64,000 bases of DNA from Rebecca billardiae RCC1528. Its lineage: Eukaryota > Protista > Haptophyta. The notes below the pieces were generated by a model. That model searched no databases, was not told where the DNA came from, and was given only the letters and a program-made list of their open reading frames with translations. This document shows positions 29,847 through 62,730 of this stretch, one piece after another. Each line of letters opens with the position of its first letter. The stretch's first letter is position 1. Position numbers and translations under genes: made by a program. The stretch is taken from the NCBI GenBank assembly GCA_965240325.2, contig OZ251224.1, forward strand, positions 2,108,001-2,172,000. Reading direction: 5' to 3'.

Positions 29847-32800
29847 ATGGCGCCCAAACCGGCGGCGAGCGCGGCGGAAGCGCCCGGCGCGGATGTGTTG
29901 GCCTCTCTGCCCCTCCTCGTCGACTTCCAGTGCACGCCAGAGCTCGCGGCGGTGATCCGCGATGAGCTCGAGGCCATTCGGCATACGACCGAGGCGGAGC
30001 GCCACCTGGAACGCGCCAAGGAGACGTCGGCGGGCGCTGATCGCGAGTCGGCGCGCGCGCACGCGGAGGTCAGGAAGGCCAAGGAGAAGGCGAGCGAGGA
30101 GAAGAAGCGGACTGGGGAGGCTGCGGCAGAGGAGGCCAGCAGCGCGCTGGCCTCGGTCCTCGCTCTGGCCAAGTCGAAGGATCTCGCGGCGCAGGCGGCG
30201 GCGGAGGGGTACACGGCGGCACAGAAGGCGCTGAGCGCCGCGCGCTCGAACTCGGACGAGCGCGCCAGCCAGGCGTCCGACGCCGTCTCGCGCCACTACC
30301 GCAAGCAGTCCATCAAGCTGCACCCGGATCGCAACGGCGAGCACCTGCGCCCGCAGTTTGAGTCGCTCGCTGACGCGGCGACCGTGCTGCGTAACGGCGA
30401 GCTGCGGCAGCGGTACGTCGAGCAGATGGTGACGGTGCTCAAGCAGGAGCCCGAGCTTGTGCGCATGGCGCACCGCTCGTGGCTCGAGCGCAACGGCTTC
30501 GCCGAGGCCAGCAGCGCGCCGCACGACGACATCGACGGCACCGACAGCGGCACAGCGCCCAAGTTTGCTCGGCTCACGGAGGGCGGCACGGGCGCGGTGC
30601 CCAAGATGGCGCAGATGCTCGCGATCGAGGTCGTGAGCGGCAAGCCCACCATGGACGTGCGATTCCCACTCGGCGCGCAGCCCGGCGTGTACGCCGACTT
30701 CCGCGTCTCGTGGCAGCTGCGCCGCTTTCAGCTCGCAGACGACGCGGCGGCCTCCGGGCTTGTCCCGATCAGCCAGGTCGACTGGCTGAACGCGTGCGTG
30801 CGCACCAGCCTCGACATCCCGTCGTTCGGCACGTTCGAGCTGCGCTGGGCCCTCGACTTTGGGCGGCAGAACGAGTCGGGCGAGCCGCTGCGCTCGCCGT
30901 GGTCGACGTGGCTCCTCGTGCTCGTCGAGAACCCGACGCACGCCCACCTGATGCAGGCGCGCGAGCACGCAGAGAGGACGGCCGAGGGACGGCTGCGAAT
31001 GCTCGAGGCGGCGGTGCGCTCGGCGGGCGCCGTGCCCACGCCGATCTCGACGAAGGATGCGGTGTACCACTCGGAGCGGCTGCACGTGGGGCAGGTCCGG
31101 CTCGCCTCCGCCATCGGCCGGCTCGAGCGGCTGTACGAGGAGCACGCGAAGGGCTCGGCGGACTCGGGGCTGCGGCCGAGGCCCGAGGACGCGTCACGAG
31201 TGGCGCGCCTCTCGCGGCACGCGGGCGAGGTGGGCGCGCGCGCGACGAACACGTCGCAGATGTTCGAGCCCATTCTCGCGCGCGAGAAGAAGGCAGAGGC
31301 CTCGAGCCGGTTCTTCCGATTCATCCGGTACAAGCTCGAGACCGGCCTGTTCGCGGACTGGATCTCGGATACATCCGGCTCGGGTGCGTGCTCGTGCAAG
31401 CGAGCGCCGAGCGGCGGTGCGCGCTGGCCCTGCGGCGGTGCGGTGCGCGTGTGAACGCGATGGGCTCGGCGTGCGCCCCGCGCCCTGCGCAGGCCCGACC
31501 GAAGCGGTGCTGGTCTCGGAGGGCGGCAGCGTGAACCGGCTGTACCAGCTGCTCGTCGAGGGACCGCACCGCCGCGTGGGCGGCGGCGGCGGTGGCGGCG
31601 GCGGCGGCTCGGCGTCAGCGCCCGCGAGCAACGGCGAGCACGTCCTCGAGGTAGACTCGTTCGTGCTGCAGAGCGCGACGCGGCGCGACGACCTGTTCAC
31701 GGAGAAGCAGCTGAAGAAGCTGGGCGAGACGGCCGTCAAGCTCGAGGCGGCGGAGCGCAAGCAGGAGGAGGCGGAGCGGCGCGCGGAGGAGCGTGCCGAG
31801 CAGAAGCGCCTCGCGGACGAGAAGGCCGCCGCGGAGGCGGCGCGCGCCGAGGCCGAGGGGCGGGAGCGGGAGCGCAAAGCGGCCGAGCAGGCGGCCGAGT
31901 CGGACGCGAGGCTGAGGGTCTACCAGTCCGGCATCAAGCTCGATTGCCGCGTCATGCTCCAGGGCCTCAAGGGCAACCAGCACCTGAACGGACGGGTGCG
32001 CGCCGCCCGCGCTCACGCGCACGCGACGGCCACGCGAGTACCCACCTCGTCCTACCACCGTAGCACTACGAGTAGTCTGATCGTTTGCCTCGCCTCTCCG
32101 CCGCGCCGTGCGCCGCCAACCGCGCGCGGCGCTCTCACGCCGCGCACGCGCGCCCTGCGCTGCGCCGCACGCGCGCGCGCGCAGGAAGGGACCGTGTGCT
32201 CCGTCGACGACGCGGTCGTGCGCAAGGGCCGCGTGGTCGTGCAGCTCTGTGACACGGCCGAGTGCGCCGCCGAGCAGATCTCTATCCGGGTGGAGAACGT
32301 GGTCCTCATGGACGCCGAGCTGGGCCACGGGCTGGAGGACGAGCTGGTCGGGGATGGCGGCGAGCACGGAGCGACGGCGGGTGGTGCGCTCGAGCCCACG
32401 CCGCCCGCGCGCGCCGCCAGCCAGCACCCGGCGAGCGCCGCCGTCGCCGCGGCGGAGGCCCGCGAGCCGCAGCCGCCCGCCGCACCGCGCAACCGGCGAG
32501 AGCAGCAGGCGATGACGCGCTGCCGCTTCATCACGAGCAAGTCCGGCTGCAACAACGGCGCGCGCTGCAAGTTCTCGCACTCGCTCGATGCGCCCAAGTA
32601 CCCGCCGCCCATCGTGCCAAGCGGCGCGCCGCAGCCGCAGCCGCAGCCGCAGCCGCACCCGTTGCCTGCGAGCGTGCCAACGCCCGCGGCCGCGACTGAT
32701 GACGCGGCGCTCAGCCCGGCGCAGAAAAAGACTCAGGAGAAGGAGAAGAAGAAGAAGGCGAACAAGAAGGCGGAGCCGGTGGGCGGGGTGGCGACGGCGC

Positions 32801-47219: not shown

Positions 47220-49889
47220 ATGGCGGCTGTGGTGAGCAGCGGCAGCGGGAGTGCCTTCCAACCGGCCGACCGACGAGCCATGCAGCCAGGTCCCGGCCGC
47301 ATCGGCGCTGCCGGCGGGCCTTCGGGTGGCGTCAATCAGCGCGTCATCGCCGCGCGGCGCATCCAGTCCCAACATCGCGGGCGCAAGACGCGGTATGCCC
47401 CGCGCGCGCGCGCGCGCGCGTGCGCACACCGCAGCCAACGCGATGGCAGCCGAACGTGCGACGGCAGCTCGCCCGCGGGCAGTGGGCGGGGCCAATGCCC
47501 CCGTGCCCTGCGCCGCGCTCATTACGCCGGCGTCCTCGCCCTGTGCATCCCCCCCGCGCCGCACCACCCGCCCTCCCCTCCTCTCCCGCGCCCGCAGCAA
47601 GGACCTCACTCGGCTCAGGGGCCTTCACTCTGAGCTGCTCGGGCTGTATGCCATGCAGATTCAGGCCGTGGTCCGGGGCAAGCTCGCGCGGGACCAGGTG
47701 CACGGGCGGCCGCGCCGCTCCACGCGCCGCCAGCCCAAGCCGCGGCCCGCCGCGCTCGAGCCGCCGAGCGCGCGCGCGTCGCGACTCGCCACGCCAGAGG
47801 CTTCGCCGGCGGTGCGCGCGCGCGGCGGCGCGGCGTCAGCGCGGCCGTCGGCGCAGCCGTCGCTCCGGGCGTCGGCGCAGCCCTCGCCGAAGGCGTCAGC
47901 GCAGCCGTCGCTCAAGCCCTCCCTCCAGCCCTCGCCGCAGCCCTCGCCCCAGCGCTCGGACGCGCGCTCGGACGCCCTCCCGCCCGTCCCCTCTGCAAAC
48001 AGCGCCGCCACGGCCATCCAGGCAGGCTTTCGTGCGCGCACGGCGCGAGCCGAGTCGGCGCGGCGGCGCGAGGTGGCGGCGGCGCGGCGCGAGGAGGAGC
48101 GGCAGCGGCGCGAGCTCGAGCGGCAGCAGCGCGAGGCCGCGGCCGCCGTCGAGATCCAGCGCCACTCGCGCGCGACGAGCAGCCGGCGCCAAGCCGAGCG
48201 CGCGCGCGGCGCGCGCGCGCGCGAGCGCGAGCGCGAGCGCGCGGCGGCGCAGATTCAGACGCGGCAGCGCGGCCGGCGCGCGCGCGCGCACGTGCGCACG
48301 CGGCGCGAGCAGCGCGCCGAGGCGGAGCGGCGCGAGCGCGAGTCGAGCGCCGCCGCGGCGATCCAGAGCCGCGTGCGCGGCAGGCAGACTCGGCGGCGCG
48401 CGAGCTCGCAGCCGGGCGCGCGCCGCGCCGCGGCCGCCCGGCACCGCTCGCCTGTCGCGGAGCGCGTGAGGCGCGAGGCAGCGGTCCGAGCGGCGCTTGA
48501 CGCGCGCGCGCGCGCGCTGCGCGACGACGTGGACGCGCCTGCGGACGGCGGGGCGTGGCTTGCCCGCGAGGACGACGCCGCCGCCGAGCCCCTCGCCGGC
48601 GCGGCCGACTCCATCTACGTGCCCCCCCTGGCAATGCGCCACCCTCACCTGTACTCGGCGCACGCGCGGCGCGCAAGCGCGGCCGGCGGCGGCGCGCGCA
48701 CGCTGAGCGGCGCGCACCCGCTGCCGCCGCGCTCCGCGGGGGACGGCGGCGCGCTGGGCGGTGCGGGCTGGGCCCCGGCCGAGCCGCCGGACACGGCGGA
48801 CTCCGCGCCGCCCGCCTATCGCTCCCGCGCTGACCTGCTGCTCAGCACCTGCCCCTCACTCGGAGCGCCGACCGACACGCGCTCGAGCGTGGTTGGCGGT
48901 GCGCGCCCGCTCAGCGGCGGCAGCGGCGTGGGCGGCGCGGGCGCGCGGCCGGACTCGATCGGCGTCTCCTCGTGCGGCGGCGGCGGCGGCGGGGGCATCG
49001 ACGAGCTGGGCGCCACGGGCAGCAGCTGGACGACCGCGACGCCGCACCCCGCTGCATACGGCACGAGCGCCGGCCTCGGCACCACCGGCAGAAGCGCCGA
49101 CGGTGCCGGTCGGCCGCCGGAGCCGCCGCGCGCCGCTGAGGCCGCCGCCGCGCAGCGCGGGAGCGCCGGGGCGGGCTCGCTGCACGCCGTGGTCGCGCTG
49201 CAGCGCGCGCAGGCCGAGATCCTCGGCGCGCTGCCCGCGCGCGACGCCATCCGCCTCGAGCACCTCCAGCGGCGCAAGGACGACGCCATGCTCAGGTAGG
49301 ATTGGGCTGGGCGGTTCGATCGAGCGCCCGCGCCGCGCCGGCGCGCGCGCCGCGCTGCGCTGCTCTGCGCGCGCCGCGCCACGGCTGAGCGCGCCGCGCG
49401 CGCGCCACCCGCCCGCCCGTCGGCCCGCGCCCGCCCGCTCGCTCGGCGCGCGCCGCTCGCAGCTACCTCCGCGAGCGCGTCTCCTTCGACTCCGCGCGCG
49501 AGCTGCTCGGCATGGCAGACGCAGACCCGGACCCGTATGCGCGGCACGTGCACCAGGCGTCGCACGCGCGCGCCGAGCTCGCGCTGCTCGGGGCGCACGT
49601 GGAGGCGGCGCGCCGGCAGTACGCGAGCGCGCTCGAGCAGCTGTCCATCGAGGCGGCGATCGCCCTGCCGCCCTCTGAGCTCCAGCGGCTGCACGATCTG
49701 AACGCGGAGCTCGAGCGCGCGCTGCGCGTCGGGCTTGCGGCGCAGGAGGCCAGTCGGCCGAGCCGCCAGGGTGAGGGTAGCGGCGCAGACGCCGCCGCGG
49801 GTATGCTGGGTCGGCATGCGGCGCCCGTGCTGGCCGGCGACGCGGCGGCAGCCTCGTCGGACGAGAGCGCCGTGTGCTCGCTGCAGTGA
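47220..49889 (+). CDS. IQ-motif (calmodulin-binding) low-complexity protein
   Basis: About six IQxxxRGxxxR-type motifs (IQSQHRGRKTR, IQAVVRGKLAR, IQAGFRARTAR, IQTRQRGRRAR, IQSRVRGRQTR). Predicted introns 47393-47597 and 49296-49462 keep frame. Confidence 0.8.
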
Positions 49890-51134: not shown

Positions 51135-53565
51135 ATGGCGCTCAACTCGATGCAGGTATGAAGCGTGTGACCCGCCGAGCCCGCGCCGTCGAGCCCGATG
51201 CCCGCCGACTCTCACGCGCGCGCGCGGGTCTCCCGCACCCGTCCTCGTCATCAGCGCCATGTGCACAGGGCGCTCAGCAGCTGGCAGCTCACTGAGGGCA
51301 CGACGAGCGTCTCGCAGCGCGTGCTCCCCGACGTGCTCATATTAGAGCTCACGCGCCAGCTGCCCACCACCCTGCACGAGGTGCGCATGCCTTCGCCGCG
51401 ACCACGATTTGCGCATGCGCACCGCCGCCCTCATCCGTGCCACCTGCGTGTGCGGCCGCGCGCGCGCGCAGGTGGAGGCGATCTGTGCGCACATCCCGTC
51501 GCCGGTGGCGCCAGCCTTGTTGTTACGTGTCGTGACGGACGCCATCGGGGAGGCCTCGCGCATGGCCTCGACCGCGCACCAGCCCGTCGCGCCGCCGCTG
51601 CAGCCGCACATGCACATGCGGCAGCCACAGCCGCTGCACTCTCAGCCGCAGCCGCAGCCGCAGCCGCACTCTCAGCCGCAGCCGCAGCCGCCGCGCTTCG
51701 GCCCGATTGAAGGCGCCGCTCGCGCCGGCGGGAAGAGCGCAGCAGCCACGCACGACACGCTCTCGCCCTTCTACGTGCCGCCGCCCTCGCCCTCGCCCTC
51801 GCCTGTGCTCGCGCAGGAAGCGCTGTACAGCGCGGCCGGCTGGCTCAGCGACGAGCCGCGCGGAGCGGGGGGCGGGTGTGGCGCGCAGCCGATGCAGGGC
51901 GGCGGCGGTGTGATGAGTGCGTCGGGCGCCGGCGCCGAGCCCACGAGCGAGAGCGGCTCCGCGCTCGGCTCGCTCACCGTCTCGCCCACGCCGCTCTCGT
52001 CCGACGACGATGGCGAGGCCTGCGGCGGCGGCGGCGGCGAGCGCGGGGCCGGCAGCGATGACGACGCGAAGGACGAGCTGGTCTCGCTCCGCATGGCCGC
52101 GCTCGTGTCGCACTCCATCGGTCTGGAGCCCGTCACCGCTCTCTCGCCCTCTCGGCTGCCCATCGATCCGACGAGCGCCACGCACCGCGGCGGCGGCGGC
52201 GGCGGCGGCCTTGGGCAGGCGGCAGCGGATTCAGACGCGCGCGAAGCTGGTGAGGGGCCCGCGAGCCGATCAGCGAGCGTGCCGTGCTCGCTCGCCGAGA
52301 TCTACCGGCTGTCCAACCTGAACAAGCGGCGCAACAAGCAGCGCAAACGGCTCAAGTCGCTCCTGTCCTCAGCGACAGCCGACGAGTCGGAGGGGGGCGG
52401 CGGTGCCGAGGGTGCGCCCGAAGCAGACTCGGGCGCGGAGGAGGAGGCAGGCGGTGAGTTGTTCGGGGAGCGCGCTGGCGGTCCGGGCGCGGAGGGCGGC
52501 TCGGCCGAAGCCGGCGACGAGCGGGGCGGCGGCGCGGCGCGGCGCGCGGCAGGCCGCGTCGCGCCCGGCGCGGCAAGCGGCGCGCCTCCGCCCGAGCTCG
52601 AGGACCCGATGTGCTTCATGCAACGGATCGGGTGGCTTGCGCAGCAGCAGCAGCAGCAGCAGCAGCATGGCGGCGCGGGTGGGTTGGACGCGCTGGCGGG
52701 GGTGGGCATGGGGCCCACGACGGGCGGCACGGCCTTCGGCGAGCTCGGTGGCGCAGCGAGCGGGGCGGAGGGCGGAGGTCCGCCCGGTGCCGCTGCTGCC
52801 GGCATTGGCGCACGCGAGCGGGGCGCGCCACAGCCGCAGATGCCTGCCGCGGCCGCGGCGACGGCGGTGGGCGGCGGCGCAGCAGCAGCCGCAGCAGGAG
52901 GCAGCGCATCTGGCGCCAGCGGCGGGCCGGGCGGTCTGGGCGGGTCGAGCTCGTCGCAGCGCAGCCGCGGCAAGCATCGCAGCTCGAAGCGCGCAGCACC
53001 ACACACGCCCGGCGCCGGCGGCAGTGGGGCCGGCGGTGGCGGCCAGCCTGTCGGCAGGGCAGTCGGTGCGGGCGGCAGCGCCGGCGCCTACGGCGTGTCG
53101 ACACTGAACGGGGCATCGACGCTCAGCGCTGGTGGCGGCGGGGGGGGCGGCCCGCCGGCCCGCAGCCAGCCGCCCCGCAGCAGCCAGCAGCACATGGGCA
53201 TGGCGCCGCCCATGCCCGGCCAGGCAGGCGGCGCGGTCGGTGCAGCGCCTGGAATGGTGCCGGCTACTGCCTGGGGGGCCGCGCCACTCGCGTGCGGCGC
53301 GGCCGCGATGGGCGTGCCGCCCGCGCAGTCGGGGAGCAGCTGCATGGGCAGCGGCACGGGCTCGCACCCGCCATCACGGCGGCGCAAGCCCGCCTCGCAG
53401 CCGACGTCGGGCGTCGCGCCCCCACGCTCGCAGTCCCAGCACGCCAGCGGGCTCGCTGGTCCGCCACACGGCCCGCCGTTGCGCGCCGCCGGCGGACCAA
53501 GCCAATGGCCGCTGCCTGGAGCCGGCGTGGCATCGCATGCGCAGCAGAACAACCAGCAGCGCTGA
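51135..53565 (+). CDS. Protein with N-terminal HRDC-like domain and long Gly/Ala/Gln-rich disordered tail
   Basis: Predicted introns 51156-51254 and 51381-51471 give MALNSMQRHVHRALSSWQ...QRVLPDVLILELTRQLPTTLHEVEAICAHIPSPV, resembling the RRP6-type HRDC pattern. Basic NLS-like KRRNKQRKRLK. Confidence 0.6.
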
Positions 53566-55436
53566 CAATACAGAGTACAGTTACTCATCACGCGGGCGGT
53601 TTAATTAATCGAATTTAGCGGTTTTTTTTTCAAACAGTGGCCACGTCACGGCGAGGGCTCCGCGGCTGACCGCGCACCCGGCTGGCCGGCTGCCGCCGGG
53701 GCCCGCGGGCGCTCGGCCGGGCCGGGGCCCGCAGTGTGAGTGCGGCGGCGCCGAGTGGCACTCCCGACGCGGCCCCGGGGCGGCTGCCACGCGGCCCGCC
53801 CACCACGCACGCGTCCTTGCTGCGCGAGAAGGCATGCCAGCTGCGGTCATTCGACTTGTGCCGCCCGGGGTAAACCGTGGGTCAACTAGCCAAAGTGCAC
53901 GAGCCGCGAGCGGACCGGGAGGTCCCCGCGTGATGATGCGCGATGGCACCATCCGTAGGCCACCCGCATCCGGCGGCAGCCGGGATCGAGATATGGAATC
54001 CGGAGCAGGTCTGCACTCTACTAAAGCGCGACTCGCTCGCTCGGGCGTCTGGGACCGCCAGATTTCAGACTTTTGGCCCCGCTAAGTACCAGATCGAAAT
54101 CTGCCGCGCTCCGGACTGTCTGTGTCCGGACTGTGGTTGGGCGCGACGAACGCAAAGCGATGGCGGGCGAGTGCCTCGACGCCCCGCGCGCTCAACCTTT
54201 GGGTGATGGTGTGCTCGCGACGTCGGCGTTGTCGGGGCGGTCGAGCCGGCGGGCGCAGGGAGGCCGTCAAAGTCGACGAGCGTTCGCTCGCGCGACGCGG
54301 CCGCGGGCGTTCGGATGGTCCGGCCAGCACTCGTCCCAGCGCTGCGGCGTGTCGTCGTCCCGGTCGGCGTCGGCAGCGGCCGGCCCGCCGCAGAGCACGG
54401 CCAGCTCGGCAGGGACATGCACTGCTCCATGATCGTCCAGCTGGCATCAAACCGTCTCGCTGCACATCGGCTGATGTTCGCCTCGGATGCGGGCCGCGCG
54501 CCGCCGTCGTGCTCGCCCTTCGGCTGCCGGCAAGACAGGGACGATGGCAGCTCAGCATGAGATGACGTGATGACGCCGCAGCTCGAGCACGTGCAGGGCG
54601 CGCGGGTGGCTTGCCAACCGAGTGCTATGACCGGCGTTGGCCTTGCTGCCAGCTGCATTATCTATGACAACGCGCCAACCTCGAGCGCATGGTCGCGCGG
54701 GGCCGAACAACACTTTGCAGCACTCTTCCAAGCCGCCTCACAGCCGGTCAATGCCGAGCCGCTGCTACCGGCGGCCCGCGACACGACTGCCAGGCGAGCA
54801 GGGCTCCGAGGTGTCCTTGACCTTGACCTTGTCAGTCACAGTGCGGTGGTCGGCCCGCATGATCCTTTGCCCGAAGGTCCTGGCGCCCCAACCCGGGACG
54901 AGTGGGGCCGAATTCAACACTTTTCGCAGCACTCTTCCGCGGCTGCGCGCCTCCGAGCCGTCCCGGCCACGCAGCGCCCGGCACGACCGCCGGGACTGAG
55001 ACAGGTCGAGTGATGACCGTCAGACTTGACAGACTTGACTGCCACGGGCGGGGCTCCGAGCCTTGTCCCTGTCAATGCGGTGGTGCCCGCATGATCCTTT
55101 GCCCGATGGTCCGGCCGCGCCCGCCCGGGACGAGCGGGGCCGAACAACCTAGTATCCTGCTAATAATACGTGTGCCTTCCCGCGAAACGAGTACCGTACT
55201 GCTGCACCACATTTGTACATTGACGCTGAAGTCATGACCGAAATACTAAAGCACATATGGATCCGCCGTCATCATCATCCGTCGTCATCGGCCGTCACCC
55301 GGTCATCGTCGAATCAAATTGCTTGGACGGAGGTACTGCACGAGCGGCGGTACCCGCGCGCGCGTCATCCGCGTCTCGTCATCAAGCTCCGCCCTCGGCC
55401 CTCTCCCCGACCCCCCGACCCGCACGCACCACCGCG

Positions 55437-55822
55437 ATGGATCTCTTCAACGTGCAGCCCGTTGAGTTCGACACGAGCGTCGATGTGGAGGAGAAGCGTC
55501 ACCACCATCACCAGTACGTGTGCCTTCCCTCGCCCCCGCGACTGCGCGGTCTCGCCTCCTCGAACGCGCGCCACACGCGCGCCGCGCATGCTAACGAGCG
55601 ACGTGCCGTTCACGTCACGCGCGCGCCCGCCTGTGCCGCGGTAACAGCCGCCACCACCACCACGCGGTCGAGACGGTCGAGATGGAGGAGAAGCGCCACC
55701 ACCACCACCGCCACCACCGCCACCACGAGCTCGAGACGGTCGAGCTTGAGGAGAAGCGCCACCACCACCACCGCCACCACCGCCACCACGAGGTCGAGAC
55801 CGTCGACATCCTCCCGATGTAG
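55437..55822 (+). CDS. 83-aa His-rich repeat microprotein (copy 1)
   Basis: Exons 55437-55513 and 55648-55822 with a GT...CTAAC...AG intron translate to MDLFNVQPVEFDTSVDVEEKR-HHHHHRHHHH-AVETVEMEEKR-HHHHRHHRHH-ELETVELEEKR-HHHHRHHRHH-EVETVDILPM*. Splicing restores the 21-aa repeat register. Confidence 0.8.
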
Positions 55823-56551
55823 ATGGCGATGATCGAGCCGTGGACTCAGGCTCGAGATTGGCATGTTGCAGCCAATTGCCTGTCGAGTGTTTGACCGCAT
55901 GCCGCTGCCTTTTGAGGCTTCCTGAGTATGATACCGGCCGTACGCACCACGCACGTGCGGCGGTGCGTCGTCCGACGAGACAGACCGACTCCGTCACTCA
56001 CGACGCGCCGCCGAAGCCCCCGCGGCGAAGGCGGATCGTGACGATGACTTTCCGCTAACGATGTGGCCGCCAAATTGTCACCGCGCGGCGATCAGCCAGT
56101 CTACCGCCTTCCGGCTTCTGAGACTTCATTCAGTACGGTCCGGCATAATTCCGTCGCAGTCCGTCGCCTCGGACGCCCGGGTTACAGTCGGTCACATATT
56201 TACTACGGGATTCAGACTCTGTAAGTCATCGTAATATTGTACTTTGTAGTCGGATAACTTTTGCGGCCCGCCGCCGTCGGCGTCCTGACCATTGAGTTAG
56301 ACCAGTGCAGCCTGGCTCAGAGGTCGACGTGAACGCCACGGTCACGCGTGGGGCCGTCAGGACGGAAGTCGGCGGAACGCGTGGGAATTCAATCAACGAA
56401 TCGGCAGCCTGCACGATCAGCCAGGACAGGTCCAGTCGGAGTGCCTGCAAGCTGAAGAGAGGGCGTGCAACCAAGAGACTGGGCTAACGCTCATCGAAGA
56501 AGGATCGGTACTTGGTCGGTCACGCCGAATCGCCGTGGAAATGCGCCTCGT

Positions 56552-56939
56552 CTACATCGGGAGGATGTCGACGGTCTCGACCTCGTGGTGGCGGTGGTGG
56601 CGGTGGTGGTGGTGGCGCTTCTCCTCAAGCTCGACCGTCTCGAGCTCGTGGTGGCGGTGGTGGCGGTGGTGGTGGTGGCGCTTCTCCTCCATCTCGACCG
56701 TCTCGACCGCGTGGTGGTGGTGGCGGCTGTTACCGCGGCACAGGCGGGCGCGCGCGTGACGTGAAAGGCACGTCGCTCGTTAGCATGCGCGGCGCGCGTG
56801 CGGCGCGCGTTCGAGGAGGCGAGACGGCGCAGTCGCGGGGGCGAGGGAAGGCACACGCACTGGTGTGATGGTGGTGACGCTTCTCCTCCACATCGACGCT
56901 CGTGTCGAACTCAACGGGCTGCACGTTGAAGAGATCCAT
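56552..56939 (-). pseudogene. His-rich repeat microprotein copy 2 (inverted; 2-nt insertion before the donor site shifts frame as assembled)
   Basis: Near-identical reverse complement of copy 1 including the intron (56860-56727). Exon 1 ends CACCACCATCACACCA versus CACCACCATCACCA in copy 1. Confidence 0.7.
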
Positions 56940-57192
56940 CGCGGTGGTGCGTGCGGGTCGGGGAGTCGGGAGACGAGCGTTCGGGGAGGCGTCGTGCGAC
57001 GATCGCGCGTCTCGCACGCGTCTCGGCGACGTGCGTCCCACGATCCTGAAAAGCTTCGAAATACTTGAAACTGCCAACCAAGTGACCAATCAGACCAAAA
57101 TCGGACCAATCGGATGAGCGAGAAGCGCGGGAAAAGCGAGACGACGCGAAAAGTGAGAGAGTCGTCCGGGCGAGCCCGAAATGGTGCGGACT

Positions 57193-58247
57193 GAGGCCAC
57201 TCGAGCGACTTCGTGTCTGGCGAGGCAGATCGCGCCAGTGCGTGGCGAGGCAGACGCTCGCCTGCCTCGCCGCTTGGCGAGGCAGCTAAGCTAGTAAAGC
57301 CGCGGCCGAACTTTACGAAAGCCAAATGTCTGCCGGTGCGCCGCCCGTCTTTTGCGCACGGTGACAAGGGCGCGCGAGGGCGCTTCCTCACGATCCCGAA
57401 GAGCGCTGCGCGCGGCGTCGCGTTGGCGGCGGCAGCGGCGCTGGGGTGTATCTTGCCCATTCTGCGTGGTGGCGCGCTCTCATGACGCCTCGGCCGCCGC
57501 CACGCCATGCGCGACCGGGCGTGTCGCCTTCTTGACGGGCAGTGCACACGCCCTTGCAAGCGCACAGCCGTGAAGAGCCGAGAGCGTCCGTCGCGAGCAC
57601 GCCGCCCACGCGATATGCGTTATGTTGTCACCGAAGCCACCTTGCGCATGCGCTTCGCCGAGTTCGCCATGCGTTCAGAGCAGTCAAGATCGCTGAACGA
57701 GAGGCCTGTCATCGGCTGAAATGCAGGTTAGCAGTGCTCATCGTAGCTGCTACCCATGGTCATCCTGGCTCGCACATGCCAGAGCGCGAGCACCCAGTGT
57801 CATACGAATAGCCCTGGCAACGCATCCCGCGTGGGCGGCGTGCTCGCGACGGACGCTCTCGGCTCTTCACGGCTGTGCGCTTGCAAGGGCGTGTGCACTG
57901 CCCGTCAAGAAGGCGACACGCCCGGTCGCGCATGGCGTGGCGGCGGCCGAGGCGTCATGAGAGCGCGCCGCCACGCAGAATGGGCAAGATACACCCCAGC
58001 GCCGCTGCCGCCGCCAACGCGACGCCGCGCGCAGCGCTCTTCGGGATCGTGAGGAAGCGCCCTCGCGCGCCCTTGTCACCGTGCGCAAAAGACGGGCGGC
58101 GCACCGGCAGACATTTGGCTTTCGTAAAGTTCGGCCGCGGCTTTACTAGCTTAGCTGCCTCGCCAAGCGGCGAGGCAGGCGAGCGTCTGCCTCGCCACGC
58201 ACTGGCGCGATCTGCCTCGCCAGACACGAAGTCGCTCGAGCGGCCTC
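57193..58247. mobile_element. Non-autonomous foldback element, ~430-bp TIRs, GAG ends, 5-bp TSD GGACT
   Basis: Arms 57193-~57621 and ~57819-58247, with GGACT at 57188-57192 and 58248-58252. Confidence 0.88.
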
Positions 58248-58529
58248 GGACTGATGAGGAGTCAAGAGTGTTGGTAAATGAGTTATCAAGTGTTCAATGT
58301 GCTGGGTAAAGAAGTTATCAAATGTTCAATGACTGGCGCCAACACGAACGGCGGCTTGTTCTTGATGATGTTCTCAACCAGCATGGACGCCAACTCATGA
58401 ACAACGGCCGCGGCCTACAAATCTACACAGCACTTGGATCAGACGGCCCCAAGGGAGATAGCCGTAAATTATCTCCCTTGGATGCCCAGCGGCGGCGTGC
58501 TAGCTGCACACAAGGCGCCTCCGTGCGCA

Positions 58530-59363
58530 TCACGGGTCGAGGATCGTGGTGACCGCACCCAGCTCCCCAAAATCAGCCACGATCTCGACCGCTGCCGTGA
58601 CTTGCGTGCACTTCGCAATGGCCCCGCATATGACGAGCTCTCCCGCCCGCAGTGCGATGCCACGTCCGTTGAGGTGATTGGCGCAAAACGTGAGCGCAGA
58701 GAGTGGCGAGCCGAGCGGGCACGCGGTGCCCTTGCCCGTATCCACCTGCTGCCCACCCAAGCGCAGCGTCGCCGTGCACCGCGCGAGGTCGGCCGGCGAC
58801 ACCTGTCCGAGGTCGCCATCGCTGCTGGCAGCCGGCGAGCCCGTGGGGTGAAGGCGGGGGCCGAGCACCACGCCGGCCGCGTTGACCGAGTCGGCCAGCT
58901 TCTCAAAGGTTGTCGCGTCGGCGAGCGTGTGCCGCGTCCCCACAAGCTCGACAGCGAGCCTGACCTCTGAGAGCGCCGCCCAGACGTCCGCTTCGGATCG
59001 AGTCGTGCCGTCAGGAAGGGGTGCCAGGTCGGAGCCGAGGATGAACGCGACCTCGGCCTCGAAGGCTTTCAAGTTGGCGGCGCGAACTGACATCCCCGCA
59101 GGCGCCTCGACGATGCTCTTCGCAAAGAGTGGGCCATAGACACATGGCTGCCCCTCGACGAGCCCGATGCCGCCCAGCTTGTAGCCAGCGAGCCCGCCCA
59201 CCTGCGTGCAGAGCGGGTGAGCCGCCAGCGCGGCGTGCACCGCGTAGACATCTTCGATAGTAGACACCCACGACGGATACGACTCGCGCGAGTCGATCAG
59301 CTTGCCCGTCGTCCACGCGGTGAGCAACGCTCCGGCGGCAGCGCGCGAGTCTTTGGCGGCCAT
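58530..59363 (-). CDS. 2-keto-4-pentenoate hydratase-like protein (fumarylacetoacetate hydrolase family)
   Basis: AGYKLG, VYGPLF, FEAEVAFILGSDL, AVELVGTR, LADSVNAAGVVLG, LGSPLSALTFCANHL, LRAGELVICGA. Confidence 0.88.
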   Translation of the reverse strand: MAAKDSRAAAGALLTAWTTGKLIDSRESYPSWVSTIEDVYAVHAALAAHPLCTQVGGLAGYKLGGIGLVEGQPCVYGPLFAKSIVEAPAGMSVRAANLKAFEAEVAFILGSDLAPLPDGTTRSEADVWAALSEVRLAVELVGTRHTLADATTFEKLADSVNAAGVVLGPRLHPTGSPAASSDGDLGQVSPADLARCTATLRLGGQQVDTGKGTACPLGSPLSALTFCANHLNGRGIALRAGELVICGAIAKCTQVTAAVEIVADFGELGAVTTILDP

Positions 59364-59482
59364 CGTAGAGTAGCTGGGTACTTGTCACTTGTGCCGACGA
59401 CGACGGGTGCCCTGTGCCGTGGTGCAGCACCGCCTCGGGAGGGCGCCCCGCCCCCCGCCCCAACCCCCCTCCCGCGATCTCC

Positions 59483-60418
59483 ATGTTCGATGTGGTGGCC
59501 TACCGGTTCGCCACGGCGGTGCTGCTCGCTGCCGTGGCGTACGCGGGTGTCACACTGCCTTCCTCTGTGAGCGCGACCACGCGCGCCTTCGCGCTTGCCA
59601 ATGCGTTTGGCGGGGGCGTGATCCTGTCGGCGTCACTCGTGCACATGCTGCCGGAGGCGAGCGAGTGCGAGGTCCTTGGCGACTTTCCGTGGGGCCCGGC
59701 GATGCTCGCGACGGGATACCTATTCCTCCTGTCGATCGAGCTCATCGCCGACCGCCTGACCAACGTGTTCGCGCTGGACCAGAGCATATCCTGCCGCGAG
59801 CCCGGGCACGGGCTCGGCGCGCCGCTAGACACATCAAAGGCGCCCGCGACGAGCGATTCATCCAGCCCGACGGATGACCCGAGCCGCGGGCTGCTACCGG
59901 GCAGCAAGACGCCACAACGCTCGAGCGAGGCGGTCGTCTCGTGCGCGAGCCACTCCACGCTCGCGCACTGCGAGCAGCGCCCGCTCGCCGCGGTCGCCGC
60001 CACGTTTGGGCTGACCGCGCACGCGCTGCTGGAGGGGCTCGCGCTTGGCCTGCGCTCGTCGTGGACGAGCTTCGCGCTCGTCGGCTTCTCGATCGCGGCG
60101 CACAAGCTGTTCGCCGCGCTCGCACTCGGCGCCATCTTCGCCGGCATGCCGCAGTCGCGCCTCAGGCAGATCGCGACCCTCGTCTTCTGCTCGGCCACGC
60201 CCGCCGGCATCCTGATCGGCTCAGCACTGCTCGTGGGCACGTCGTGCGTCGTGAGCGCGCCGCTGGGCGCCTTCGCCGCGGGGAGCCTGATGTGGGTGGC
60301 ATTGCACGAGGTGATCAGTCCGGCGATGCACTCCGGCAGGGAGGCATCCATCTTCCTCGTGCTCTCGGCCACCTGGGCCGGCTTCGGCGCGATGACCGTG
60401 CTCGCGCTGTGGGTATGA
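59483..60418 (+). CDS. ZIP family (Zn/Fe/Mn) metal transporter
   Basis: ANAFGGGVILSASLVHMLPEA, TM4 TAHALLEGLALG, TM5 AAHKLFAALALG, SATPAGILIG, AAGSLMWVALHEVI; about 8 hydrophobic segments. Confidence 0.93.
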   Translation: MFDVVAYRFATAVLLAAVAYAGVTLPSSVSATTRAFALANAFGGGVILSASLVHMLPEASECEVLGDFPWGPAMLATGYLFLLSIELIADRLTNVFALDQSISCREPGHGLGAPLDTSKAPATSDSSSPTDDPSRGLLPGSKTPQRSSEAVVSCASHSTLAHCEQRPLAAVAATFGLTAHALLEGLALGLRSSWTSFALVGFSIAAHKLFAALALGAIFAGMPQSRLRQIATLVFCSATPAGILIGSALLVGTSCVVSAPLGAFAAGSLMWVALHEVISPAMHSGREASIFLVLSATWAGFGAMTVLALWV

Positions 60419-60532
60419 CGGCGGCAGTCAGTCAGCAGCAGGCAGCAGTATCGGCGCGTCGCACGCGCCGCCGGTTGCGTAGTTCGTGCGGCGACTGCCG
60501 CGCTCGGGAAACGCGCGCGTGGCCGACGTCCG

Positions 60533-62730
60533 GTGGTCAACGGCGGCGCCGTGACTTCGGACGGTTCGCACGCGACACTCTCACGGACAGGGATGGTCCT
60601 CGTGATCGACAACGTCGAGCACGAGCTCGATGATGATGGGAATGGCAACGATGCCTACCCTTCACGGCATCCGCTGAGACCGATGCTGCGAGCGCCCCGA
60701 CCATCCTCACGAGAGGACAGCTGGACGGGGCGCGAGGTGCTGCTCGATGACGGGCAGCAGCAGGTGATACACTCAAAGGACGTGTACATCATTGATGAGC
60801 GGTCGCTGGTCGAGGGGAGGCACACTCCATTCGCGGCCAGCGATGACAATGCCGAGCCCGAGACTGAGCTGGGGGACGCCGCTGACGGCGAGCTCACCGG
60901 CGAGGGCGAGGAGCATTTTGAGATTGAGGACGGCGCGGCCGATGACGGCGGCGCTGCAGCTCATGACGACGGGGGCGCGGCGAGCGAAGCTGCGCAACCG
61001 AGCGCCGACGGCGATGACGCCGAAGGCGATGACGACGCACGAGCTGGTGAGTCCGCGGCGCCCGAGCTGCCGCGCGACTACGACCCGATGCGACGAGACC
61101 GAGCGAGGCGGAGCAGACCCGCCGCGCAGACGGTGCAGGCTGTTGTGAATTCGCTCCCTGGCATGCGCCAGACTGGGCGTGTGTGGTACCTACACTTGCG
61201 TAAGTGTTTGCTCGAACATGGGTTCGAGCCGTGCCCGAGCGCGCCGTGCATCTACTCGAAGGCAGTCGATGGCGGCTACGTGTTCGTCGGTCACTTTGTC
61301 GACGATCTGCTGATGATGAACATCTCGAAGGACAAGAACGCGTTGGACGCGCTGATGACGGCGTTGCTGACGCACTACGAGATGCAGGGCGCGGACTGCC
61401 TGAGCAAGTTCCTTGGCGCCGAATTTGAGACCACGGTGGACGGACTTTTTACCCACCTGAACCAGTACATCGGTGATGTGTGCGAGCGCTTCCACCTGAG
61501 TGGATAGCGCCACCCACCGACCCCCGAGTGCAGCGAGACGCGCGAGATCCCCCGCCCGCTGCAAGCCCTCCTGCTGCGCGCTGACCGCCAGCACTACCAG
61601 GAGATGACCGGTGCCCTCATGTACTGCATGACGACGTGTCGCCCCGACATCGCGCACGCCGTGAACATGCTGGCACGCCGGATGTCCAATCCCCGGCTCT
61701 ACGACTTGACCGCCGCGAAGCGCACGCTCCGATACTTGCTCGGCACGCGTCGGCGCGGCATCCTCTTCCGGCACGCGACGCACGCACAACACCCTGATTT
61801 GGTGGCGTACGCGGACTCGGACTGGGCGAACGATCGTGAAGATCGACGTTCTACGACGGGATACCTTGTTATGTACAACGGGGTCCCGATCTCGTGGCAC
61901 AGCGGACTGCAGAGCGTGGTCGCGTTGTCTACGTGTGAGGCGGAGTACATCGCGCTAAGCGAGTGCTGCCGCGAGGTGATCTACCTGCGCGACCTGGTCA
62001 CGTTTTTGAACGAGCCGGTCGTGGAGCCCACGACGGTGATCTACGAGGATAACCAGGGCACGATCGATTTGACGAACAACCCGGTGCACCACAAGCGCAC
62101 CAAGCACATTGACGTGAAGTACCATTTCACGCGGCGCGCGCAAGCCGACGGCGCCGTGCTGATCCAGAAGGTGCCGACCGACGACAACCGGTCCGACATC
62201 ATGACCAAGGCTACCGCGACGAGTACTTTTCTCAAGCACGTCGTGGCGATACTGCATGCTGTTCCACCACCTCCGCCGCCTTCGGCATGATGTCGAGGGG
62301 GGGTGTTGTATTAATCCCGAATTTCCTCCGTGCACGATTTCTTTTCCTTTCCAGGCGCTTGGATCCAACCGCCAGGAGAGGTCGAGTCCCAGGTACTACT
62401 CGCTGTCGTACCTGCCCTCCCTGAACCGGCACGAGCGCGCTCGGCCCCTAATCCTATTGCTTTCGCCGCTGTCCGCAGGCGAACGCAAGCCGCCGGGTAC
62501 GTATGTCCGTTTTCCCCCGGCGCTATTGGTCTAACGACCTATCACTGGACCTGGTGCCGTTTGCTTTTTGCACCCGTGTGGGACGACTCCCGCACCGCCC
62601 GCTCGTCCGCACGGACGACGCTGCTGACGACGTCCGCAGGGACACTGTGATAAGCCCCTGCGTGACCGGGCCTTATCGTCCCCTGACGAGAAGGTTACAT
62701 CCGCACACCTACTAGACGCTGATAGTAACA
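60533..62730 (+). mobile_element. Decayed, 5'-truncated Ty1/copia LTR retrotransposon (partial RT, RNase H, PPT, 3' LTR)
   Basis: SLPGMRQTGRVWY, PCIYSK, HFVDDLL, CRPDIAHAVNML, YADSDWA, RRSTTGY, ALSTCEAEYIAL, YEDNQG, HKRTKHIDVKYHF. One in-frame TAG at 61505-61507. No gag, protease, integrase or 5' LTR seen. Confidence 0.93.
62304..62730 (+). repeat. Putative 3' LTR (427 bp)
   Basis: Follows the polypurine tract GAGGGGGGG. Begins TGTT and ends AACA. Confidence 0.7.

Follow-up and report, generated by a model that had tools for sequence, protein, structure and literature searches.

A predicted spliced, histidine-rich orphan gene with an inverted second copy, and a neighbouring ZIP transporter gene, in the haptophyte Rebecca billardiae

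A 64,000-nucleotide (nt) stretch of the haptophyte Rebecca billardiae RCC1528 (NCBI GenBank assembly GCA_965240325.2, contig OZ251224.1, positions 2,108,001 to 2,172,000 of the forward strand; hereafter the window, with positions counted from its first letter) contains a short two-exon gene, copy A, whose predicted product is 83 amino acids (aa) long and 30% histidine (25/83 residues). The gene is accompanied by a nearly identical inverted copy, copy B, and a ZIP-family metal transporter gene is found beyond copy B. The host is a very GC-rich eukaryote (59-80% GC in 2-kb bins of the window), and by the look of its sequence copy A is a real protein-coding gene. The reading tentatively favoured here, at somewhat less than an even chance, is that copy A specifies an orphan His-rich protein that would bind divalent metals reversibly and in a pH-dependent manner, copy B being either in decay or alternatively spliced.

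Copy A consists of two exons on either side of a predicted intron:

55437..55513, plus strand: copy A exon 1 (77 nt, phase 2), which encodes the acidic N-terminus, the first EEKR and the first four His
55514..55647, plus strand: predicted copy A intron, 134 nt; donor GTACGT and acceptor AACAG, with GCTAAC some 52 nt ahead of the acceptor
55648..55822, plus strand: copy A exon 2 with stop, 175 nt; completes His block 1, followed by two 21-codon units and a partial unit

Between the ATG at 55437 and the stop codon TAG at 55820-55822 the predicted spliced coding sequence amounts to 252 nt, and its translation lacks Cys and contains 25 His, 14 Glu, 8 Arg and 3 Lys. The His residues fall into three clusters, in that three 10-residue His/Arg blocks alternate with two 11-residue acidic spacers, both of which end in EEKR. 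The order of modules is acidic N-terminal part, block, spacer, block, spacer, block and a 10-residue tail that is a truncated spacer, and Lys-Arg directly precedes all three blocks. At the DNA level the exon 2 repeat is built of 63-nt (21-codon) tandem units, with 2.5 copies in each arm of the inverted duplicate described below, and CCA/CCACCGCCA sub-repeats are present inside the tandem array. No signal peptide is apparent by eye, the N-terminus being acidic and without a hydrophobic core. The sequence-only reading of this stretch had described an intron-containing protein of this length, with 25 His in three 10-residue blocks, acidic 11-residue spacers, no Cys and no signal peptide, and for copy A that description holds in full, the splice junction being a predicted one. 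Stretches dense in His (at least 7 His in 12 residues, six-frame scan) occur only in copies A and B within the window, and the same scan of 66 kb of related loci gave one weak place.

A further ATG, at 55257, precedes the start of the His gene in the same frame; no stop lies between the two, and translation from there would add 60 Ser/Ala/Pro/Arg-rich residues. This extension (55257-55436) is without counterpart in copy B, and because its GC content at third codon positions (GC3) is only about 65% by hand count, it is probably 5' untranslated region. Farther upstream of copy A an 86-nt direct repeat lies at 54827-54912 and 55061-55144 (84% identical, 232-234 nt apart), with a third, partial copy visible by eye near 54690-54730. 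Rfam and tRNA scans over 53000-60500 returned no match, and a look-up of RNA sequencing runs for 55200-60450 listed none.

The His frame carries a strong and frame-specific codon signature. GC at the three codon positions is 0.85/0.21/0.98 in exon 2 and 0.72/0.16/0.80 in exon 1 of copy A, and the 50 codons of copy A that specify neither His nor Arg have a GC3 of 0.92 and a GC at second positions (GC2) of 0.16. The intron of copy A, at 0.76/0.76/0.68, has no codon periodicity. For reference, GC3 in the window is 0.89 for the ZIP gene and 0.81 for a hydratase-like gene beside it. All six frames are open across the His repeats, and long open reading frames (ORFs) overlap the region in other frames; every one of these has a GC3 of just 0.48-0.74, and they appear to be open through base composition in this genome. 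The sole other frame with comparably high GC3 is an antisense, Trp-rich frame, into which synonymous CAT and CGT codons, as read off the sequence, put stops.

Removal of the predicted intron restores both the frame and a 10-residue His/Arg block placed right after EEKR, as in the other two units. The intron resembles two others in the window, each of which joins stop-free exons:

31384-31492: inferred intron, 109 nt, GTGCGT..CAG, from frame change and GC3 continuity
49296-49462: inferred intron, 167 nt, GTAGGA..CAG, from frame change and GC3 continuity

Motifs resembling CTGAC, CTAAC or TGAAC lie about 40-80 nt before the acceptors of the inferred window introns, which could be used as a local reference for splice sites. 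A third candidate, at 41805-41647 on the minus strand, was not used, because an intron that is stop-free and a multiple of three in length is not confirmable by frame continuity.

The differences between repeat units are likewise of the kind expected of coding sequence. Unit 1, in exon 1, is an older, diverged copy with 62% DNA identity to the reference repeat copy. What sets it apart from units 2 and 3 are synonymous changes (CGT/CGC, CAT/CAC), conservative exchanges of Asp/Glu and, at one position, of Val/Met/Leu/Ile, His/Arg swaps within the block and a two-codon in-frame indel.

Copy B lies tail to tail with copy A, and the two share the following layout:

55406..55823, plus strand: arm A of the inverted duplicate, which opens 31 nt ahead of the ATG and closes 1 nt beyond the stop
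56551..56970, minus strand: arm B of the inverted duplicate, 98.3% identical to arm A over 418/420 nt
55824..56550, no strand: unique spacer, 727 nt, within which the 3' ends of both convergent copies would fall
56861..56939, minus strand: copy B exon 1, 79 nt; phase changed by 2 inserted nt, CA, within 56861-56867
56727..56860, minus strand: predicted copy B intron at the homologous sites, 134 nt, GTGCGT...CAG
56552..56726, minus strand: copy B exon 2, stop included; no difference from copy A exon 2

Of the 252 exon sites none differs between the copies by substitution, against 5 of the 166 remaining sites (Fisher p = 0.0095); four of these five fall in the intron, at 55516, 55548, 55573 and 55608 of copy A. 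With the homologous splice sites copy B loses the His frame after residue 25 and continues as a Thr/Arg/Ser-rich sequence, whereas a GTGTGC donor shifted 4 nt downstream would restore the frame and give a protein of 85 aa with Thr-Ser-Ala in place of one His. Copy B may thus be either a fresh pseudogene or a gene that uses the shifted donor. The earlier statement that the protein occurs twice is accordingly right for the DNA, with its 98.3% inverted duplicate and identical exon 2; for the protein it would hold only if copy B used the shifted donor. The term pair was an overstatement, since use of the homologous splice site leaves copy B with a frameshift.

On the upstream side, homology between the arms tails off some 31 nt ahead of the ATG, whereas past the stop it ends sharply after one base; the flanks of the two copies, putative promoters included, are unrelated. 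The fading upstream homology and the unrelated flanks would fit an older duplicate with a converted transcribed core better than a sharp-ended mobile element. The long inverted arms (418 nt) with tandem sub-repeats (63-nt units) resemble those of foldback-type elements; within the 64-kb window, sharp ends with a target-site duplication and multiple copies were not found, and neither the spacer nor the arms have a further copy there. The convergent inverted pair is probably kept alike by gene conversion.

No relative of the His protein was found. Homologue searches used the 57-aa peptide of exon 2, a short and low-complexity query that weakens all of them: a word-indexed search of 5.8 billion proteins gave 532 candidates, none significant, an exhaustive HMMER search of 1.84 billion representative proteins gave no match, and the ESM Atlas offered no usable match. 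PDB, Pfam and NCBIfam likewise returned no match to this peptide, in keeping with the sequence-only reading, which had not recognised the family. The peptide was also back-translated and its pattern sought in metagenome, viral and prokaryotic contigs; each collection gave about 600 pattern matches, none of which was confirmed. ZIP proteins of Diacronema lutheri and Pavlovales sp. CCMP2436 turned up in the protein collections searched; because the proteomes of these two algae thus appear to be among those collections, they probably have no annotated homologue of the His protein. Small spliced genes easily escape annotation. In the strain of sequencing run ERR14847148, exact look-ups of five ORFs that overlap the His region found no second allele, nor did a word search with the long plus-strand frame overlapping that region. 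The literature on algal, haptophyte and Diacronema His-rich proteins yielded no algal His-rich protein of this kind.

The calculated mass of the copy A protein is 10.5 kDa and its isoelectric point (pI) 6.4, with a net charge of about +13 at pH 5.5, -1 at pH 6.5 and -7 at pH 7.5. AlphaFold2, run on the exon 2 peptide as a single sequence, returned one continuous helix over residues 2-52 (mean predicted local distance difference test score, pLDDT, 89), and the product probably forms a single long helix or is disordered. A coiled coil is not claimed, because the 21-residue period, which equals three heptads, provides one hydrophobic pair per unit only. His pairs three or four residues apart on a helix have the classical geometry of helical metal chelation, and the His/Arg blocks, if modelled correctly as helical, would offer several such pairs. 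Clustered His binds Ni, Zn, Co and Cu, both in 6xHis tags (PMC10382482) and in the Helicobacter protein Hpn (PMC4671568, PMC5312948). By analogy, metal binding in vitro by three deca-His/Arg blocks would be close to certain; metal buffering is plausible, and any role as a metal buffer or chaperone in the cell is an inference from this general chemistry of His clusters.

The favoured scheme can be put together from these elements. Copy A would be a lineage-restricted, orphan two-exon gene that grew by tandem duplication of a 21-codon unit, made up of an acidic spacer ending in EEKR and a 10-residue His/Arg block, and that probably arose from a minisatellite. If expressed and spliced as predicted, its product would be soluble, Cys-free and without signal peptide or membrane segment. 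The three His clusters would bind Zn, Ni, Co and Cu reversibly and depending on pH, and such binding would make the protein a low-affinity, high-capacity buffer.

Among known systems the closest likeness is to Hpn and Hpn-2 of gastric Helicobacter (PMC4671568, PMC5312948), which are also very small, soluble, lineage-restricted and rich in clustered His, and which are cytoplasmic, as is predicted for the His protein. Multi-site, low-affinity, pH-dependent binding of the Ni/Zn type would be expected of the His protein, as of Hpn. There is no sequence relationship to Hpn in Pfam, NCBIfam, PDB or the 1.84 billion representative proteins, and the His protein differs from it in being eukaryotic, predicted to be spliced, built of a regular 21-residue repeat of His/Arg and acidic parts and modelled as a long helix. 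Around the His gene no sign of a urease or hydrogenase context is seen. Hpn has Cys pairs, of which the His protein has none.

The role proposed here, that of a small cytosolic metal buffer, is the one filled by metallothioneins and phytochelatins, the usual buffers of algae (PMC7216689). These bind through Cys thiolates, whereas His ligands are weaker and pH-sensitive, and the His protein, being free of Cys, is by definition no metallothionein. With runs of 4-5 His inside its 10-residue blocks, it also recalls engineered poly-His tags and metal-dependent poly-His assemblies (PMC10382482), and both metal chelation and metal-bridged oligomerisation would be chemically expected. Unlike the tags, it occurs in nature, and its three blocks contain Arg among the His and alternate with acidic spacers. 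The histidine-rich Ca-binding protein of the sarcoplasmic reticulum likewise has tandem repeats of His/Arg-rich and acidic runs; it is large, lumenal and bears a signal peptide, unlike the His protein, and homology between the two did not appear in any search made. The His protein would work like an Hpn-type protein or a natural His tag, yet it seems to fall outside every known family. It is distinctive in being eukaryotic, Cys-free, predicted to be spliced and built on a regular 21-residue repeat of His/Arg and acidic parts, and in its probable origin from a minisatellite.

On the far side of copy B lie a second inverted repeat and two further genes:

57193-58247: palindrome with arms at 57193-57621 and 57819-58247, 429 nt, 99% complementary, and a 197-nt loop
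58530..59363, minus strand: hydratase/decarboxylase-like gene, 277 aa, fumarylacetoacetate-hydrolase superfamily; weak matches
59483..60418, plus strand: ZIP-family metal transporter gene, 311 aa, single exon; PF02535

The product of 59483-60418 is a clear member of the ZIP family (PF02535, 113.2 bits against a cut-off of 35.1, E 1.9e-32, profile positions 9-323 of 323) and is predicted to transport Zn, Fe or Mn. H180, E184, G185, H207 and K208, which belong to the His...Glu-Gly and His-Lys membrane motifs, are invariant among seven Pavlovales-type homologues; the best named ones are those of Pavlovales sp. CCMP2436 (53% identity) and D. lutheri (49%). The ZIP gene starts 2,544 nt from the ATG of copy B, which agrees with the distance of about 2.5 kb given by the sequence-only reading. 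To place the two genes side by side, as that reading did, is not warranted, since both the palindrome and the hydratase-like gene intervene. The palindrome begins about 220 nt from the copy B arm, occurs only once in the window and matches nothing in Rfam; counted with the His-gene pair, it makes two large inverted repeats of 98-99% identity within 3 kb. A gap of only 119 nt separates the starts of the hydratase-like and ZIP genes, which makes the former, rather than the His gene, the divergent partner of ZIP.

The hydratase-like protein matches HpaH at 56 bits, DmpE at 55 bits and PF01557 at 17 bits, all under the curated cut-offs. It is weakly like the hydratases and decarboxylases HpaH, DmpE, MhpD and DmpH of bacterial aromatic degradation (44-56 bits, far below the equivalog cut-offs), and its weak kinship includes the bacterial 2-oxo-hept-4-ene-dioate and 2-oxopent-4-enoate hydratases. 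A Logan contig of run ERR14847148, which stems from a different strain or haplotype, matches 58486-60590 at 98.4% DNA identity (over 2131 nt, 9 mismatches and 3 gap openings); its ZIP protein is identical to that of the window and its hydratase-like protein is not. A Ty1/copia-type pol fragment (60533-62290) follows directly after the ZIP stop and comprises a 324-aa ORF that matches RVT_2 (PF07727, E 3e-17) and an adjoining 228-aa ORF without Pfam match.

Five ZIP loci of relatives were compared with the window: those of D. lutheri and CCMP2436, each with 10 kb on either side, and those on three shorter Logan contigs that carry a further homologue. Within the flanks available, no His-rich ORF occurs in any frame at any of the five, and the functional locus of His gene and ZIP that had been proposed thus finds no support in synteny. 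In four of the five an Acatn-family (PF13000) gene adjoins the ZIP gene or is one called gene off (D. lutheri, CCMP2436 and two of the three Logan contigs); the remaining contig, L005, ends just past the ZIP gene. The window has no Acatn-family gene, and the copia fragment sits on the side of the ZIP gene on which relatives have it. The ZIP gene was the sole feature shared with the window in tblastx comparisons of the relative loci, for which reason orthology is not established. A His-rich loop is absent from every ZIP of this subfamily, whether or not a His-rich gene lies nearby. The annotated intron of the CCMP2436 ZIP gene spans an assembly gap and is uninformative on splice sites.

Several considerations weigh against the favoured reading. 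The His pair could be structural DNA, because the region is rich in near-perfect inverted repeats. The coding signal draws on few independent codons, because the units are repeats, and all of the evidence for coding is internal to the sequence. Selection on at least one copy would seem weak or lapsed, because the homologous sites put copy B out of frame, and with no relatives found conservation is limited to two local copies. The in-frame ATG at 55257 leaves the true N-terminus of copy A undecided, and the AlphaFold helix is suggestive at most, high-confidence single-sequence helices being common for charged repeats. Much of this bears on the view that the region is non-coding repeat DNA, a 63-bp minisatellite grown on a CAC/CGC microsatellite within a foldback-like inverted duplication, its His frame being coincidental. 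That view is unlikely but a serious contender. It accounts for the 63-nt array with its CCA-type sub-repeats, the adjoining 99% palindrome, the empty searches for relatives and for RNA runs, the broken frame of copy B and the six open frames. What it does not explain is a codon-position asymmetry specific to one frame (GC3 0.92-0.98, GC2 0.16-0.21) and present also in the non-repeated exon 1, a GT..AG intron that restores frame and block length together, unit differences that are synonymous, conservative or in frame, and substitutions that avoid the exons; nor was a target-site duplication, a sharp upstream end or a further copy seen in the window.

If copy A is a gene, its protein may do something other than handle metal, for example as a pH sensor or switchable polyampholyte, or as a targeting or condensate module for nuclear bodies or nucleic acids. 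This, too, is credible and on balance doubtful. The swing in charge from +13 to -7 between pH 5.5 and 7.5, the pI of 6.4, the lack of Cys and the lack of a truly adjacent metal gene would suit it. A poly-His tract in yeast Snf1 is reportedly a pH sensor. Human poly-His tracts are nuclear-speckle targeting signals (PMC2644819), and a review of yeast Snf1 in which polyhistidine is mentioned names three distinct modes of control (PMC10376661). The sequence gives no positive sign of nuclear import or RNA binding, however, and three deca-His/Arg blocks would bind metals anyway, the two roles not being exclusive. A stronger version of the metal-binding proposal, in which a triple deca-His helix of recent minisatellite origin (63 bp) is a Cys-free cytosolic buffer or chaperone of Zn, Co or Ni that replaces metallothionein and possibly exchanges metal with ZIP, is quite unlikely. 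It is improbable that the His protein and ZIP form a co-regulated functional locus, with the former as a ZIP-coupled zinc chaperone or buffer. A ZIP gene within 2.5 kb would be uncommon by chance if a related genome holds roughly a dozen ZIPs, which is our estimate, among some 14,000 genes, and this ZIP subfamily has no His-rich cytosolic loop of its own. The gene number for the related genome is published as about 14,000 (PMC8379373). Against such coupling stand the intervening palindrome and the hydratase-like gene that is ZIP's divergent partner, the absence of a His-rich neighbour at the five related loci, four of which have an Acatn-family gene near ZIP instead, the fact that relatives' ZIPs lack the loop as well yet manage without such a neighbour, and the rarity of functional gene clustering in eukaryotes. 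With the 2.5-kb distance as the sole point for linkage, a functional partnership is unsupported, and ZIP would be an ordinary neighbour. A multicore peptide precursor, in which EEKR would provide dibasic sites that free three 10-residue His/Arg peptides, is very improbable. The Lys-Arg before every block and the threefold spacer-plus-core unit invite the idea; with no signal peptide by eye, however, the protein would have no access to secretory Kex2/furin-type proteases, the cores themselves contain Arg, the two neighbours scanned match no peptide-modifying family, and the model is a continuous helix.

The value of the His gene, a predicted and well-formed orphan, hinges wholly on its expression. 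On any Ni or Co column run with this alga, a natural protein bearing three deca-His blocks would co-purify. Marine haptophytes have to make do with very little Zn, Co and Ni, and not much is known of how they buffer metals inside the cell. If the favoured reading of copy A as an orphan metal binder is true, it would offer a clean example of a new gene born from a minisatellite, and a His-based, pH-switchable, Cys-free buffer would be a solution different from that of metallothioneins and phytochelatins.

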